A stretch of DNA of 64,000 nt, taken from assembly GCA_946965045.2 (NCBI GenBank), contig OX337228.1, forward strand, positions 1,984,001 through 2,048,000, in the 5' to 3' direction. Positions 3,399 through 59,167 of this stretch are shown here, piece after piece. A program made the position numbers and the translations under genes. How positions within the stretch are numbered: the first letter of the stretch is position 1; every line of letters starts with the position of its first letter. The stretch comes from Epithemia pelagica. Lineage: Eukaryota; Protista; Bacillariophyta. The notes under the pieces are model-generated. The model did not search any database and was not told where the DNA came from. It saw only the letters and a list, made by a program, of their open reading frames with translations.

Positions 3399-4749
3399 CT
3401 ATACCTTTTTGCAGAGCTGTACAATGTCCTCGTCAGACAAGACGTGATCCCTGCCACATCGCTGAGGTTGATGTTTGGCACTCTTCCCCCACTGTTGTTT
3501 GTTAAGCAAAGAAGGTACAAGATAAGACAATAGGATGTGTGACACAGTAGAAACGACCTTGCTACAAGAACACTTACAACCCATGCATGGCTGAAATCGT
3601 CAATTAGACTCTTGTGCAATCGATTACAAAACTCCTCAATTGTTGGATTCTCTGCGTGCAATATAACCGGTTCTTCATAGTCAGGGATTTGGCCTTTTGG
3701 TTTTGTGTAAATTCGCAACATGTTACACCGATCTGGACAACAAATACATAAGTGGTGAGAAATGGTTTGTGATGCGAATGCGGACCACAGGTTCTTTGTG
3801 AAACATACCCCAGATAGACTCCATCAACTCCTCCAGATTCCATTTTTGTTGGCTGCTGATTGGCACATAGTTGGGCATTTGGTCCAGAATATCGAGCTCT
3901 TCAATCGTTATGGCATCAATTTTATTAAACACATACAGGACAGGAATATAGGCCCGGTTTCCTTCAATAACGTCAATGAATTGGTCCACCGTAATATCTT
4001 CTCTGAGGATAATTTCTGCACAGGATATTTTGTATTCCTTGCATACCAATCGTGCAACTTCGACATTCATGCCTTTCGTTTGTTTTGTAACCTCTTGGTA
4101 GCCAATTCCTCCATTTTCCTTTTTAATGAATTTGACTTCGGGTGGTGACTGATTAATCCGAATACCAAAACTAAATAGCTCACTTTCGATAATCTTTTTG
4201 TGTGTCACGGGCTTTGCGGCATCCAACACTATAAGAATCAGATTGCAGGTACGCGCTGTAGAAATGACTTGTCGTCCACGACCCCGACCATCGGCCGCCC
4301 CTTCAATGATTCCAGGCAAGTCAAGAACTTGAATGCGAGCACCTCGATATTTCATTGTTCCTGGAATACAGGTGAGTGTGGTAAATTCATATGCCGCGGC
4401 TTCACTGCGCGTCCCGGTCAGGGACGTGAGTAAGGTGCTTTTGCCCACGGACGGAAATCCCACTAAACCGATCCGAGTATCGCCACTCTTGGTCACGTCA
4501 AAGCCTCGTCCTGCATCTTTGCTTCCAGCCGATTTCCCTCCAGGGCCATTCACCAATTCCGACTAGATAGAAAATGATCAGATACCAAGGGGAATCAAAC
4601 TCCGATTCTCCAAACGATGAACGACGTACCTTGAGTTTGGCAATTTTTGCCTTGAGGGTTCCCAAGTGATAATTTGTGGCCTTGTTTTTCTGGGTACGGG
4701 CCATTTCCGCCTCCAGCTCATCAATCTTTTTTTGAATATCATCCGACAT
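3399..4749 (-). CDS. DRG1: Developmentally regulated GTP-binding protein 1 (OBG family), 4 exons: 4749-4630, 4562-3809, 3732-3578, 3491-3399
   Basis: [61 protein letters not shown] and a C-terminal TGS domain ([17 protein letters not shown]). Three GT-AG introns join the ORF pieces in frame. Confidence 0.95.
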
Positions 4750-26594: not shown

Positions 26595-28436
26595 ATGGCA
26601 AAGACCAATCATCGACGACAAGGAGGACACCTGGGAAAGTGTTTTATTTGGAGAATTGTTGCCTGTTTTGAATTGCTTTCCTCTTCTTCTTCCAGAGCGA
26701 CAACTAGCAGCTGCAGCAGCAGGACGAGGGCCTTGTCATCCTTTCTAGCACCAGCAGTGGGTAATTCTTGGTGTCGTGGTCGTCGATTGCTCTCCAGTCA
26801 TCCTTTCTTCTTTTCTGGTTCGAGATTGGCAAGGAACTACCCCCATTCTCTTGTTGTTTTGTCGTCGTTGTCGTCGTTTTCGACCGAATCCAAATCCACC
26901 AATAACCCAAACAGTCCGAGCAACCACCACCACACTCCAACCACAACCACAACAACCATGGTAAAGAGGAACGACGAAGACAAGACCACAACCAATCATG
27001 AAGAATCGGCGGTCTCCAACAACACGAAACAACAGCAACAACAGCTACAAGATACCGCCAAGGACCAAGCATCGTCATCGTCCAATGTCAATGACATTGC
27101 CCAAGCCTTGCAACAAGTGCATTTGGAGGACGATGCGTCTCCCAAAGCCTCTTACAATAGCCAGGAGGAGGATTCCCCAGTAGTACCCAAGGCCAAGGAC
27201 CAATCCACAACCGTGCCGTCGTCGTCATCGTCATCATCGCCCCTGGTCCATTCACTCCCCAAGACAACTCCGGTACCATTATCATCTTCCCTCCAAACCT
27301 TTGCGTCGTGGATTTCTCAGGGAGACATTTCCAATGTGTTGGTCGTGACAGGAGCAGGGATTTCGGTCTCGGCGGGCATTCCCGATTTTCGAACACCAGG
27401 CACGGGTATGTGACATTACAAGAGAAGGAGAATCGACTCGAAAAAACCTTGTCTTGTGTCGGTCCAAAACTGCCAATCTGTCTCTCATTCGTGCTCCCTC
27501 TATTTGTGATTGCTTTTGGTGTCTTGTGTCTGCTTCATGATGACATTGCGCCTCTCTCCCATACATACCCACATGATGATATCCTAGGATTGTACGACAA
27601 TTTGCAAAAGTACAATTTGCCCTATCCGGAAGCCGTCTTTGATTTGGAATTCTTTACGTCCTACAATCATCAACCTTTTGTCACATTGGCGACTGAATTA
27701 TGGCCGACCGGACAAACCTTTCGGCCCACCATTACCCATTCCTTCCTCACCCTGTTGGCCCGGAAAAACAAGTTGCTTCGTGTGTACAGTCAAAACATTG
27801 ATGGATTGGAGCATTTGGGTACGTTTATATATTGGTGATTACCACGTGACTGGATACACGCGTCTTTCTTGTCAATTCTTTGCTGACGCAGCATCCTGTA
27901 TTCCTTGTGTGTCTGTGTGTTATTTCTCATATACAGCCGAACTTCCCGTGGACAAACTCGTCGAATGCCATGGCCACTTTCGTTCCGCCTCTTGTACACA
28001 ATGCGGCAAACCGGCTCCCGACATGCAAGTCATCCAGAATATAATATTGAAAAAGTCTCAAGTTCCTCGTTGTACCTATTGCAAAACGGGCAAAATCAAG
28101 CCTGACATTGTCTTTTTTGGCGAAGGATTACCCATGAGATTTCATGATTTGTTGCCGCGAGACTTGAAACAGGCCGATTGTTGTCTCGTGCTGGGCACAT
28201 CCTTGCAAGTGGCACCCGTGAGTAACATTCCCGAACAAGTACCGACTCGTTGTCGTCGCATGTTGCTCAATCGGGAATTGGTGGGACCCTTTTCTTCCCG
28301 TTCCTCCAAACGACCCCACGATTTACATCATTTGGGCGATTGCGACGATTCCATCCGATCTCTCGCCCATGCGTTGGGGTGGCGGGACGAATTGGAAGAG
28401 ATGCACCAAAAACTGGGTTCCTCCTCCCCCAAGTAG
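26595..28436 (+). CDS. NAD-dependent deacetylase, class I sirtuin (SIRT2/Hst2-like); exons 26595-27405, 27588-27818, 27937-28436
   Basis: [24 protein letters not shown] after splicing, [16 protein letters not shown], Zn-ribbon [25 protein letters not shown]. The start codon could be a later ATG. Confidence 0.92.
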
Positions 28437-43077: not shown

Positions 43078-43352
43078 GACGAAAACAAATCTAACTCTGC
43101 CAACAAGTTAATGACCAAGGGACGTTGCGATACACTGATACCTGATACCTCGTACCTTGTCTCTCGTCGATTGATCGCTTCGGCATTTTCTGTGGTCGTG
43201 GGCATGATTCATGATCTGGGTGATGTCATGCGATATCTTTTTCGAGCGACTGGAAGTCTGCTACCCGTGCTATCACCTCCTGATCAAAAGAGTAGGAGTG
43301 CTAGACGAGTAGTCCTACTGAAAATGTAGGGTTCCACGCCCTCGAAAGGATG

Positions 43353-43526
43353 TGAATAAATCCCGCCAACAGGTCGCATATTGGCGGATACATGGTCGCA
43401 TATTGGCGAATATGCATCGCCTACATATGCTTCTATGCATCTAGTTTTCTAGTCATAATTTTGGTCTAGCCACTTGTTGCACGCCGTATACACCGTGTTG
43501 TAGCGTGTAGTGGCAGGATTTATACA
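43353..43526 (+). repeat. 5' LTR
   Basis: Starts TGAATAAATCCCGCCA and ends TGGCAGGATTTATACA (16-bp imperfect terminal inverted repeat, 14/16). Internal duplicated GGTCGCATATTGGCG. Confidence 0.97.
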
Positions 43527-43549
43527 GTTTATCAGACCCAAACTGCAGA

Positions 43550-50261: not shown

Positions 50262-50435
50262 TGAATAAATCCCGCCAACAGGTCGCATATTGGCGGATAC
50301 ATGGTCGCATATTGGCGAATATGCATCGCCTACATATGCTGCTACGCATCTAGTTTTCTAGTCATAATTTTGGTCTAGCCACTTGTTGCACGCCGTATAC
50401 ACCGTGTTGTAGCGTGTAGTGGCAGGATTTATACA
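50262..50435 (+). repeat. 3' LTR
   Basis: Matches the 5' LTR except at two positions (TTCTATG vs TGCTACG). Preceded by GCGGGGAC. Confidence 0.97.
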
Positions 50436-50488
50436 GATGTGCACAACAACGAAAACCGCGCAATGGCGAGGTGGAAAAAACAAAAGGT

Positions 50489-50529
50489 TGACGACTGTGG
50501 GATTTGAACCCAAGCCTCCGAAGAGAATG
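50489..50529 (-). pseudogene. 3'-half fragment of tRNA-Leu (variable arm, T arm, acceptor 3' strand) created by the duplication
   Basis: Same as 51581-51621 except one change in the T stem (CCCAAG vs CCCACG on the plus strand). No 5' half. Confidence 0.85.
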
Positions 50530-50638
50530 TCGTGGGCATGATTCATGATCTGGGTGATGTCATGCGATATCTTTTTCGAGCGACTGGAAGTCTGCTACCC
50601 GTGCTATCACCTCCTGATCAAAAGAGTAGGAGTGCTAG

Positions 50639-51479
50639 TGTCTATTCTACCCCTGTACTCATATGAGGACAAATCCTCATATGAGTACACTTTCAAAAGA
50701 AGAATATCAAATCAATCATGTACTCCTAAGTGGTTTTTAAGTTCAGATTCGTAATCTCCATACTTGAAAACGTACCCCGTGGTATTCTCATGGTTTAATT
50801 GTGATGAGTAGTGACGATACAGTATCAAAAACAGAATTCATCCATGTTGGAGCGATGGTGATTTTCTAAACTGAGTGTTTGGAGGGGATAAAACAGAAGA
50901 CAATCAACCTGATGAGTGTTATTATCCCTAGTGATGATGACCAGTTGTCCTTTGCCTGATTGAGGCATCAAATTGAGAGAATTCAGCCAAAACAAGCCTA
51001 CATCACCACAGAGGAAAATTCTGAGACCGTAACAGCATTCGACACCAATACAGGGTCAAATGCGGCGTCTGAGCCTCCTGCACCCCAACAGTTCATGTAC
51101 AGAAAGCACAGACACCTTCAGGGAACCAGGAAAGTGCAGTGGGAGACTCAAATCCGCCAATGTATGTGAGGACAGTTGATTTCCCTCGACAAAATGGTTG
51201 GATTTGCCCTACATAAACTGGATGGATGCATTTTCCAACACACGTAGTGTCTTGCCACATAAACATAGAACATAATGGTTGATTGTGGTCTATTACTTTT
51301 CTATTTTAGTTGTTCATTTTTTTGGTAGAACGGCAGATTCCCATGGTTGGGTTACATTTTTTGTCGATAGCTTCGTACAAAAGCTACTGTGGTCTACGTA
51401 GATATGATTTTAGTAGGATTGTCCTCATATGAGGACAAGCGCTGTCCTCATATGAGGACAAACCGGCGTAGAATAGACA
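50639..51479. mobile_element. 841-bp non-autonomous TIR DNA transposon (MITE-like) inserted at CTAG
   Basis: 12-bp perfect TIR TGTCTATTCTAC/GTAGAATAGACA, flanked by CTAG at 50635-50638 and 51480-51483. The empty site GTGCTAGAC is preserved in duplication copy 1. Subterminal palindromes of the TCCTCATATGAGGA type at both ends. Confidence 0.9.
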
Positions 51480-51566
51480 CTAGACAAGTAGTCCTACTGA
51501 AAATGTAGGGTTCCACGCCCTCGAAAGGATGTGCACAACAACGAAAACCGCGCAATGGCGAGGTGG

Positions 51567-51577
51567 AAAAAACAAAA
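51567..51577 (-). terminator. RNA polymerase III terminator of the tRNA-Leu gene
   Basis: Minus strand reads ACC-TTTTGTTTTTT immediately after discriminator A73. Confidence 0.8.
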
Positions 51578-51580
51578 GGT

Positions 51581-51746
51581 TGACGACTGTGGGATTTGAA
51601 CCCACGCCTCCGAAGAGAATGGATCCTGATTCCACCTGCAGGTGAGGGGAGGTTTCGATGCTCGTGAGCAGTGGCCAGATGACATTCAACAAGTAGAGCT
51701 ACTGCTGCAATATACTTACCACCTTAGACCGCTCGGTCAAGCCGTC
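51581..51746 (-). tRNA. trnL-CAG: tRNA-Leu(CAG), exons 51746-51720 and 51635-51581, interrupted by an 84-nt GT-AG intron at position 26/27
   Basis: Spliced sequence GACGGCTTGACCGAGCGGTCTAAGGTG+GTGGAATCAGGATCCATTCTCTTCGGAGGCGTGGGTTCAAATCCCACAGTCGTCA (82 nt). It folds fully: acceptor GACGGCT/AGTCGTC, D stem ACC/GGT, anticodon stem GTGGA/TCCAT around AT-CAG-GA, Leu-type variable arm CTC-TTCG-GAG, T arm GTGGG-TTCAAAT-CCCAC, discriminator A73. Confidence 0.9.
51636..51719 (-). other. Spliceosomal-type intron inside the tRNA gene
   Basis: GTAAGTATATTG...TGCTCACGAGCATCGAAACCTCCCCTCACCTGCAG: donor, branch-like motif, pyrimidine tract and acceptor all resemble the mRNA introns in this window. Confidence 0.8.
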
Positions 51747-51870
51747 CCGCGTCTTTTGCTTACATTAAATCACACAAATTGTCATTTCCCATAAAGGCTT
51801 CATCGCACAATACGATGATCGAATGGAAGTGGAACGACCGAGAAGTTATAAGGCAGTAAATATTACAATT

Positions 51871-52016
51871 ATTAGGCGTTGATAATGTAGTCAGACTTCA
51901 TAGCCACTACCGGAAGGGAAAGCTTCTCCTGTGACGTCTTTTCAACCCGACATTGATTAGGCGTTGATAATGTAGTCAGACTTCATAGCCACTGCCGGAA
52001 GGGAAAGCTTCTCCTG
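51871..52016. repeat. Two 61-bp direct repeats (51871-51931, 51956-52016; one mismatch) with a 24-bp spacer
   Basis: ATTAGGCGTTGATAATGTAGTCAGACTTCATAGCCACT(A/G)CCGGAAGGGAAAGCTTCTCCTG read twice. Confidence 0.9.
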
Positions 52017-52020
52017 GCGT

Positions 52021-53085
52021 TCAAAGTACATAGTGGTAGAATTTTTTCTTTGTTTCTCCGTCCTTGTCGTAGAAATTCTTCGTCATGAAACCTTTCTCGT
52101 CGTCTTTCACAAATTCTTTAATTTCTTCCTTGGTGACCCATGCAAAATCTTTCAAGGCGATACTTCCGTCATCCGAAACGTCCCCCGAATAATGCACAAA
52201 TTTCATGAAAAAAGTCTTGGTGCCACAGATTCCAGTTTTTTCCTGTTCTTCGTTAGGATATGTATGCAAATCAACAGCCATTGGACCATTTCCCGGACAC
52301 CAATAAACCAAATCCTTTCCAACACGTTCATCAATGGCTCTTCGTCCCGCCGTGAGGAGAGATTCTTCTGCTCCAAGAGGTATCGTTGGTAGGTGCCATT
52401 GAGTTTGTTCTCCTTCTTTGACAAACAGAAAAACACTTTCCGTGAGCTTTCTGTCAATTGTACTAAGATTGCCACTCAAGTCTGCTTCAGTTATTCGTGA
52501 TGGCGGGTGGACGTATCCAGGTGGGAACATCCCCTCTAGAATTCGTTTCCTTCTCTCCTCCTCAGTTCCATCGAAAATTTCCTCAAGGAGGAGCTCTTTT
52601 GGGTAAGCAGGTTTTCTAACCTGCCGAAGATGGTCCCTCAGTTCATCGAAATCTTTTTCCCATTGCGGTTTTTCAGGGAGAAGTATGTTATATCGTTGCA
52701 GGATGACGGCAACTTCGATTTTCCAATCTAACCCATTCTTACGAGCATAATGATCCATGTTTATTTCATTCATCTTCTTCTTCAAAAAGAATTCACGAAA
52801 GATAGCACGTTTCTCTCCTCTCACTTTCCCCTCGCGACGAAACTTGACACGCTCCTTCCGCTCTCGTCTCTGCCTCAGTATTTCACGACGACGCTCCTTT
52901 TTCTCCGCCTTCTTGGCATAGTAGGAGCCTGGAACGAACGACACCGAGGAGAGTAGCCGGGTATGGTGGTTAAGACCATTTTGTGGGAGCAAATAATTCT
53001 GATTCATCATATGTTGACCCGTTGAGAAAACCGATGGCATGCGCCCAATCGCACGGGTTGCAAATATGCATAGAGCAGCGCTCAT
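52021..53085 (-). CDS. MRPL46: Mitochondrial ribosomal protein mL46
   Basis: Basic mitochondrial-type presequence from ATG 53085. SRITEADLSGNLSTIDRKL..VFLFVK, WHLP, KTFFMK, DFAWVTKEE (Nudix-like fold of mL46). Confidence 0.8.
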   Translation of the reverse strand: MSAALCIFATRAIGRMPSVFSTGQHMMNQNYLLPQNGLNHHTRLLSSVSFVPGSYYAKKAEKKERRREILRQRRERKERVKFRREGKVRGEKRAIFREFFLKKKMNEINMDHYARKNGLDWKIEVAVILQRYNILLPEKPQWEKDFDELRDHLRQVRKPAYPKELLLEEIFDGTEEERRKRILEGMFPPGYVHPPSRITEADLSGNLSTIDRKLTESVFLFVKEGEQTQWHLPTIPLGAEESLLTAGRRAIDERVGKDLVYWCPGNGPMAVDLHTYPNEEQEKTGICGTKTFFMKFVHYSGDVSDDGSIALKDFAWVTKEEIKEFVKDDEKGFMTKNFYDKDGETKKKFYHYVL

Positions 53086-57979: not shown

Positions 57980-59167
57980 CTAGCGGAAAACTGAGTCCAA
58001 TGGGTCCTCCGGGACAACCAGGTCTTCTTTCCGCTCCTTCAACCTGTCTCGAGCACGTTTCCGATCAATGTATGCCGTTCCCTTTTTACGCTTCTCCATG
58101 GCCCTAATGGTGTTGGGGGAAATGAATGAGGCGCTTTGGAAAAGAGTCGGTCCACCAAAGGATCCTTTGAAAATCCGAATTGGGTTCAAGACAAATCTGG
58201 GACCTATTTCCACTAAGGATGTGGAGTTGGCGAGATCTTCTTCCTTTTTTGCAGATGCGTGCTGCTCCATGATCTGATAGTTGCGAACCCATATCTGTTA
58301 ATCAGAAAGACGGGCACATTACGTGAGCCAAAGACAGTGATTGGGAAGAGGACTGTTTGCTGTAGAACCAAGAAACCCATGTCTCATTCCATCGTAGTCA
58401 ATTTGATGTATTTATTCTCATTGGTGACCTCCGACATACGCTCATCATTTTATAATCAACGACTGGGAGACGTTCTTAGTCTTTGTGTAACTTACCCTAT
58501 CGTCGGCAAAGTAAAATGACATTACCCGGTCGACAAAAGGTTTCACCTTGGGGTGTCCTCGGGGCACACCAAAGATATCGATAAATAATCCTTTTAACAG
58601 CTTCAAATGATCTAAGCGGTTGAAACTCTCATCAAAAGATAGGATCGGTCGGCTTCCCTTGAGGCAGTTTCCGGTGAGTCGAAGTTCGTCCATTGTATGT
58701 ATGTTGCTCACCAAGAACTTGACACTTGGGCCAAAGCTAGTCCCATTCGATCGACTCAGCCACATATAACAGTCTTGTTTTTTCCGACACTCCAAAAACA
58801 AGAAAGAGTTACAACTGCGAAGCATGGCAACATCCGTGACGGCACGACCAATACCCTCGCTACCAGCGTCGAGCTTTGATTCTTTCTTGTGATGTGGCAT
58901 TAAAGTTCTGAGATCCTGCAGTAGATGGCGATATCTCGCTGTCACTCCCCTAGAGCATACAACTAAACAGCGCTGCTTGTTTCGGTATTTTCCATCGCTG
59001 ATGAATTGGTCTCCACCCGATTCGGTGCTTTCGGATGCCTTTTGTGAATGCCCTTCTTCCGCATCAATTTTCGATCTCTTTCCATTAATGGATGACTGGG
59101 CGGCAGCCTGATCATCATCTGATGCCATACGCACATTACTGGTAGCTTTCCGTTTCGATCCTTTCAT
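57980..59167 (-). CDS. BRX1: Ribosome biogenesis protein BRX1 (Brix domain); exons 59167-58496, 58294-57980
   Basis: KQRCLVVCSRG..RHLLQDL..PHHKKESKLD, GPSVKF..NIHTMDEL..TGNCLKGSRPILSFD, KPFVDRV, spliced DR-IWVRNYQI, LVEIGPRFVLNPIRIF. Confidence 0.93.

Follow-up and report, generated by a model that had tools for sequence, protein, structure and literature searches.

Whether a nuclear tRNA gene can be interrupted by an intron of the kind that the spliceosome removes is the question raised by a tRNA-Leu(CAG) gene in the DNA of Epithemia pelagica analysed here, a stretch of 64,000 nucleotides referred to as the window. The gene is split between positions 26 and 27 by a segment that begins with GT and ends with AG. 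Reviews published up to 2026, which cover tRNA biology (2023), intron types (2025), non-canonical splicing (2026) and algal tRNA gene repertoires (2026), divide the three nuclear intron kinds strictly by substrate, and tRNA introns are always assigned to an endonuclease and a ligase (PMC10275265, PMC12530127, PMC13149111, PMC13578239). Full-text searches of the literature agree with the claim of the sequence-only reading of this locus that no spliceosomal intron in a tRNA gene has been described; subscription papers lay outside the scope of these searches, and an older report is possible. On the evidence of the sequence, the locus is probably (at about 60%) a live nuclear tRNA-Leu(CAG) gene that has gained a real, U2-type spliceosomal intron at position 26/27.

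The two exons and the insert have the coordinates and sequences first assigned to them (Table 1). When the exons are joined at GT and AG, ARAGORN recovers the 82-nt cloverleaf that had been predicted, a class II tRNA-Leu(CAG) in which every stem is paired and all 23 pairs are intact (21 Watson-Crick and two G-U). The spliced tRNA has the long variable arm of a tRNA-Leu together with A73, U8, A14, G18G19, U33, G37, T54-C56 and A58, and an A box, a B box and an oligo-T run are present as in a nuclear tRNA-Leu gene. Unusual features are the A10-U25 pair and the residues A32 and A38. The insert widens the spacing between the A and B boxes by 84 nt and leaves both boxes intact, and a wider spacing of these boxes is tolerated by RNA polymerase III. 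Within the insert no run of T exceeds 2 nt, so that there is no run of four or more, and its pyrimidine-rich end, downstream of the branch-like TGCTCACGA, reads CCTCCCCTCACCTGCAG. The unspliced body of 166 nt is detected neither by ARAGORN nor by any of the Rfam models, even at permissive thresholds, and the gene thus escapes standard scanners, as had been anticipated.

Table 1. Coordinates of the features of the tRNA-Leu(CAG) locus, of host introns in the window and of split tRNA-Leu genes on metagenome contigs. Positions are those of the window unless a contig is named.
Feature	Position	Strand	Description
tRNA-Leu(CAG) exon 1, GACGGCTTGACCGAGCGGTCTAAGGTG	51746..51720	minus	27 nt, positions 1-26: acceptor 5' strand, D arm and G26
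GT-AG insert at the 26/27 hinge, candidate U2-type spliceosomal intron	51719..51636	minus	84 nt, GTAAGT...TGCAG
5' splice site, G|GTAAGTAT	51719..51712	minus	intron +1 to +8 match the extended U1-complementary consensus
Branch-site-like TGCTCACGA	51670..51662	minus	A at 51665, 29 nt before the 3' end of the insert
C-rich tract and 3' splice site, CCTCACCTGCAG	51647..51636	minus	first AG at least 10 nt past the branch A
tRNA-Leu(CAG) exon 2, GTGGAATCAGGATCCATTCTCTTCGGAGGCGTGGGTTCAAATCCCACAGTCGTCA	51635..51581	minus	55 nt, positions 27-73: anticodon arm, long variable arm, T arm, acceptor 3' strand and A73
A-box-like TGACCGAGCGG	51739..51729	minus	in exon 1; single departure from consensus, at position 10
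Anticodon CAG	51628..51626	minus	in exon 2
B box, GGTTCAAATCC	51602..51592	minus	in the T arm of exon 2
Terminator-like run TTTTGTTTTTT	51577..51567	minus	T4-G-T6, RNA polymerase III type; 3 nt (ACC) past A73
MRP-L46-like gene (L46)	52024..53085	minus	upstream of and co-oriented with the tRNA; stop codon 275 nt before tRNA position 1; synteny anchor
Partial tRNA duplicate	50436..50529	minus	positions 42-73 and 53 nt of 3' flank; 98.9% identical, one mismatch in 94 nt (G-to-T, T stem)
Copia element splitting the duplicate	LTRs 43353-43527 and 50262-50436		LTRs of 175 nt each, 99% identical; target duplication CACATC
DRG1 intron	3808..3733		76 nt, GTATGT..TTCTCACCA..CCAG; branch motif 23 nt from the end
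BRX1 intron	58495..58295		201 nt, GTAAGT..GGCTCACGT..ACAG; branch motif 29 nt from the end
SIR2-family gene, intron 1	27406-27587		182 nt
SIR2-family gene, intron 2	27819-27936		118 nt, GTACGT..TGCTGACGC..ACAG; branch motif 50 nt from the end
L051 tRNA-Leu(UAA)	L051:1624-1786		52-nt insert at 26/27, GTCAGT...TACTAAC...CAACAG
L018 tRNA-Leu(UAA)	L018:2301-2471		51-nt insert at 26/27, GTCAGT...GCTAAT...TTTTCAG
L024 group, tRNA-Leu(CAA)	L024, L039, L067, L085, L086, L094		151-162-nt GTGAGT...TTGCAG insert at 26/27 and a 45-nt intron at 37/38

As the insert lies at the hinge that joins the D stem to the anticodon stem and splits no helix, the cloverleaf alone does not dictate the exact GT and AG boundaries. 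Many cuts displaced by up to 3 nt still yield a tRNA-Leu in ARAGORN, and the G|G at the junction leaves an ambiguity of 1 nt. A cut 3 nt upstream had been thought to wreck the anticodon stem; it is instead the 3' strand of the D stem that is lost. What counts is that a strong pair of splice sites sits in the one register that leaves a single G26. The junctions may alternatively be read, from their sequence, as an 81-nt insertion accompanied by a 3-nt duplication of GGT, and with this reading the tRNA itself supplies part of the splice signal. A 6-nt direct repeat, AGGTGG, is found at both junctions (51719-51724 and 51632-51637), 3 nt off the splice sites, with the 3-nt overlap GGT common to the junctions. 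Similar short repeats occur next to recently gained introns, but deletion of one unit would not restore a valid tRNA.

Host mRNA introns were located in the window through the continuity of Pfam domains, and the four found (in DRG1, in BRX1 and two in a SIR2-family gene) open with GTATGT, GTACGT or GTAAGT, the same type of 5' site as in the insert. The branch-like heptamer GCTCACG is common to the insert and the BRX1 intron and lies 29 nt from the end in both, the terminal CAG of the insert agrees with the ends of the host introns, and the length of the insert falls within the host range (76, 118, 182 and 201 nt). The likeness in signals and size class to the introns of DRG1 and BRX1, on which the sequence-only reading had drawn, therefore holds, as both introns were confirmed and the type of 5' site, the branch motif and the length class agree. 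With its GTRNGT 5' site, its branch motif at the appropriate distance, its pyrimidine-rich tract followed by YAG and its length, the insert has the make-up of a U2-type intron, and the first usable AG after the branch A at 51665 is the one that restores the tRNA. When 117,164 GT..AG segments of 30-300 nt, taken from both strands of the window, were each removed and the joins run in ARAGORN, a tRNA was obtained at this locus only. Among the 84-mers of the window (n=127,832), 65 start with GTA[ACT]GT; three of these also end in YAG, and CT[CG]AC at 15-55 nt from the end is found in a single one of the three, the insert itself. The probability that splice signals and fold coincide here by chance is low.

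Introns removed by the tRNA splicing endonuclease (TSEN) sit at position 37/38, or else form a bulge-helix-bulge in which the cuts fall in 3-nt bulges around a 4-bp helix, and 26/27 is not where the eukaryotic enzyme measures its cuts. The insert is at 26/27, and no bulge-helix-bulge is found at its junctions in either geometry, nor a relaxed form of it: at most 3 of the 4 pairs of a central helix can form, flanking helices are nearly absent, and shuffled inserts equal the score of the real one in about 70% of cases. The absence of this motif, asserted at the outset, is thus upheld for both geometries, neither of which does better than the shuffles. Rfam intron families searched at permissive thresholds across 51400-51900 gave no match, and no snoRNA or other RNA family was found by Rfam within the insert. 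Self-splicing group I and group II introns have a conserved catalytic core and measure several hundred nucleotides; this class was rejected, as 84 nt is far too small and no Rfam intron family matches. A mobile intron of the introner or MITE type was likewise rejected because the insert is single copy, its depth being that of the single-copy flanks and no second copy being found by BLAST in the window or in related loci.

In order to find comparable genes, JGI metagenome contigs were scanned for a Leu-type D loop followed by GTNNGT, which gave at least 120 loci. Most of these are organellar tRNA-Ser(UGA) genes, uninterrupted tRNA-Leu(CAG) genes or chance matches, and the true split genes among the matches listed form three groups, L051, L018 and the L024 group (Table 1). 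Viral contigs scanned with two patterns gave no matches. The genes on L051 and L018 each also carry an ordinary 37/38 intron (10 nt or 19 nt) that is devoid of GT-AG ends. Between these two genes the exons are identical at 81 of 82 positions; the GT-AG inserts share only about 45% identity in their interior but have retained GTCAG, a GCGACC block, CTAA and CAG. Such a pattern would be expected if the tRNA is in use and splice signals direct the removal of the insert. The neighbour of the gene on L051 is the C-terminus of GCN2, and contigs carrying related GCN2 genes bear fungal genes, for example Cut12. TACTAAC is the classic fungal branch site, and the L051 and L018 contigs appear fungus-like. 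In six contigs with a GCN2 gene related to this neighbour the tRNA is not syntenic. The L024 group consists of six near-identical population variants, and all differences among them fall in either intron or in the 3' flank. Its source is possibly a green alga, a lead given by the GC-rich context and a weak Streptophyta match in the atlas; a protein search with the group gave no named matches. A terminal CAG, on which the search pattern made no demand, is common to all four GT-AG inserts, and in none of the four does a bulge-helix-bulge rise above chance. The host-flavoured signals, the lack of a bulge-helix-bulge, a position that is wrong for TSEN and, in the parallel genes, the TACTAAC motif and the separate 37/38 intron are the reasons why the evidence at the sequence level favours a U2-type spliceosomal over a tRNA-endonuclease intron.

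The age of the insert can be judged from the surroundings of the L46 gene. Homologues of L46 are present on an ENA diatom contig (L121, 55% identity) and in Epithemia clementina (L122, 50% identity), and the block formed in the window by Brix, HMG box, ATP synthase D, L46, tRNA and Cpn60 is preserved in both relatives. The syntenic tRNA-Leu(CAG) is uninterrupted in both (L121:11532-11615 and L122:11362-11443) and lies on the strand opposite L46, so that the two genes are convergent, whereas the copy in the window is co-oriented with L46. The intron is therefore a gain specific to the lineage of the window, which has seen an inversion of the gene as well. More distant diatom relatives of L46 (L123-L129) have no tRNA at that place. 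A search of other diatoms for an intron at the same site had been suggested together with the first reading, and its absence from both orthologues speaks for a recent gain and not for a conserved diatom feature. The first reading of the insert as a spliceosomal intron is partly supported: all the evidence gathered from sequence favours the U2 type over the endonuclease, and the intronless orthologues weigh against a conserved feature.

Comparison with the two orthologues also reveals structural constraint on the exons. Between the tRNA of the window and those of L121 and L122, 6-8 pairs have changed on both sides and one or two have changed to G-U, none of the 23 pairs being broken; one of the compensatory changes, at pair 4:69, spans the intron. 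The unpaired positions that differ from the orthologues number only four out of 36. Such compensatory change is what long-term selection on the fold leaves behind, although it may have taken place before the intron was gained.

The surroundings of the gene are unstable and contain several repeats. The partial duplicate of the tRNA resumes at 43354..43301, past the Copia insertion, and comprises 142 nt in total, 1.1 kb downstream of the tRNA; it is bracketed by a perfect direct repeat of 110 nt (43195-43304 and 50529-50638). Between the L46 stop codon and the tRNA, in what is presumed to be the 3' UTR, a recent tandem duplication (51865-52016) consists of two 67-nt copies that are spaced 85 nt apart and are 96% identical. 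About 100 nt past the tRNA begins a high-copy repeat (51200-51495), with a depth in the DNA runs of 20-100x that of single-copy sequence, and within it lies a 43-nt palindrome (51419-51461) with a weak MIR1887-like match in Rfam.

Both junctions of the insert are spanned by contigs from four DNA runs at single-copy depth, and a second assembly of the same species (L136) is 99.96% identical across 7,022 nt around the locus. The differences number only three, at 51763 and 51768 (leader -16 and -21) and at 51678 (intron nucleotide 42), none of them in the exons, and the probability that three random differences fall within 91 nt is about 5e-4. Active tRNA genes show raised mutation in their flanks and strong constraint on the mature sequence (PMC6130373). 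The polymorphism at this locus fits a transcribed and constrained gene subject to transcription-associated mutagenesis, the alternative cause of the three differences being a single clustered mutational event. In four metatranscriptomes, reads fall only on 51994-52671 and represent pieces of the neighbouring L46 mRNA. As these reads are confined to the L46 gene, we infer the transcription and splicing of the tRNA locus from its sequence, and likewise the polymerase involved, the formation of a lariat and the use of the tRNA in translation. No joints indicative of an intronless twin of the gene were found in the DNA runs. A diverged intact copy would escape this test, and for this reason a recently disabled gene remains a serious rival to the reading as a live one.

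If the gene is live and its intron spliceosomal, maturation may proceed as follows. The tRNA body would be transcribed from the internal promoter up to the T4-G-T6 run, most likely by RNA polymerase III, and the D arm, anticodon arm, T arm and acceptor stem would all be free to fold, the insert forming a loop at the hinge. U1 would pair with G|GUAAGUAU, an unusually strong 5' site in which eight intron positions match U1, and the branch would form at CUCAC, on the A at 51665. The spliceosome would then remove the 84 nt as a lariat and join G26 to G27, creating the junction TCTAAGGTG-GTGGAATCAGG, after which RNase P, RNase Z and CCA addition would complete the 82-nt tRNA. Several features count against such a course of events. 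The orthologues are intronless and inverted relative to the gene, and the insert could have arrived recently, and possibly disabled the gene, at a site that is rearranged and rich in transposons; A10-U25 and A32/A38 are unusual, and the A box is off consensus at position 10; and an uncapped 5' exon of only 27 nt would be an unusual substrate for the spliceosome. A coupling of CUG decoding to splicing activity is speculation.

That the gene has recently been disabled seems unlikely, even if many observations can be accommodated by this explanation. Here, 81-84 nt of DNA would have been inserted at 26/27 during a local rearrangement, the splice-like ends would be partly the GGT of the tRNA and partly chance, the product would be unspliced or unused, and another gene would decode CUG. 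The intronless and inverted syntenic orthologues, the Copia element, partial tRNA duplicate, 85-nt tandem duplication and high-copy repeat of the neighbourhood, the unusual A10-U25 and A32, and the metatranscriptome reads on the L46 gene only all agree with this. However, even with the GGT granted to the tRNA, the combination of an AAGT start, a host-type branch at the host distance and a CA end is estimated here to arise in about one of several thousand random inserts. The same design is moreover present in two other lineages, in which exons are conserved while introns drift, and the polymorphism at the locus spares the exons and touches the leader and the intron. An assembly artefact or chimera, which would make the split gene itself spurious, is hardly credible given the four DNA runs that span both junctions at single-copy depth and the agreement of an independent assembly.

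Other explanations accept the insert as an intron and differ in the machinery that would deal with it. The intron may be spliceosomal and yet belong to an RNA polymerase II transcript, either a read-through product or the 3' UTR of the L46-like gene, so that RNase P and RNase Z would cut the tRNA from an already spliced RNA. The recruitment of the spliceosome is normally coupled to RNA polymerase II, and the arrangement of the genes is suggestive: the tRNA is co-oriented with L46 and begins 275 nt past its stop codon, the intronless orthologues are convergent with L46, and on L051 and L018 a co-oriented open reading frame precedes the tRNA by 470-640 nt. Co-orientation in three of three cases is nevertheless not significant (p = 0.125), and on L039, of the L024 group, the nearest identified gene is convergent with the tRNA. 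Together with the intact A box, B box and immediate oligo-T terminator, and with an L46 RNA contig that ends at 51994, far above the tRNA, this renders the read-through explanation quite improbable. Removal of the insert by the tRNA splicing endonuclease and a ligase at an ectopic site, a mode known from Cyanidioschyzon merolae and archaea, is very improbable, considering the missing bulge-helix-bulge and the separate 37/38 intron, free of GT-AG ends, within the same gene in the parallels; it would also leave the GT-AG ends and the branch motif unexplained.

Compared to known systems, the spliceosomal reading of the locus comes close to the U6 snRNA of Schizosaccharomyces pombe, an RNA polymerase III transcript that is spliced by the spliceosome (PMC5855946). 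In S. pombe and other fungi, as here, a short GT-AG intron with a branch site resides in a small non-coding RNA gene of the RNA polymerase III type, and the lineage-specific, patchy distribution of the U6 introns is consistent with sporadic gain (PMC5855946). The present case differs in that the host RNA is a tRNA, interrupted at a helix junction, and in that splicing is predicted from the sequence. Unlike U6, a tRNA is not a component of the spliceosome, and reverse splicing at the catalytic centre is therefore not a ready explanation for the insertion. Other records of spliceosomal introns come from U1, U2 and U5 of Rhodotorula and from the rRNA genes of some ascomycetes, with tRNA unmentioned (PMC5855946); these cases demonstrate that such introns can settle in structured non-coding RNA genes, none of which is a tRNA gene. 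Ectopic tRNA introns in Cyanidioschyzon merolae, Chondrus crispus, nucleomorphs and archaea are located outside 37/38, including in the region of the D arm, and are missed by ordinary scanners (PMC3728597, PMC13578239). They form a bulge-helix-bulge and are cut by the tRNA endonuclease, whereas the insert described here lacks this motif and carries GT-AG ends and a branch signal. With the canonical 37/38 intron processed by TSEN and ligase, the insert shares that it interrupts a nuclear tRNA gene and would have to be removed before use; the two differ in position, sequence signals and expected chemistry, and both kinds occur side by side in L018, L051 and L024. A 37/38 intron is often present in tRNA-Leu isoacceptors.

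Should the reading prove true, a tRNA that needs the spliceosome would break the division of nuclear introns by substrate, tRNA would join the short list of spliceosome substrates other than mRNA, and a type-2 gene of RNA polymerase III would be seen to be able to host a spliceosomal intron. As the gene is missed by both ARAGORN and Rfam, it would also point to a blind spot in tRNA annotation. The chances are evenly balanced that spliceosome-dependent tRNA genes constitute an overlooked class in several eukaryotic supergroups (diatom, fungus-like and possibly green-algal), recurring at the 26/27 hinge of tRNA-Leu and missed by every standard tRNA finder; some isoacceptors regarded as 'missing' would then be hidden split genes, and the supply of tRNA would depend on the spliceosome. 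The recurrence at one site in three lineages would also make it possible to examine by what route and at which sites new spliceosomal introns become established.
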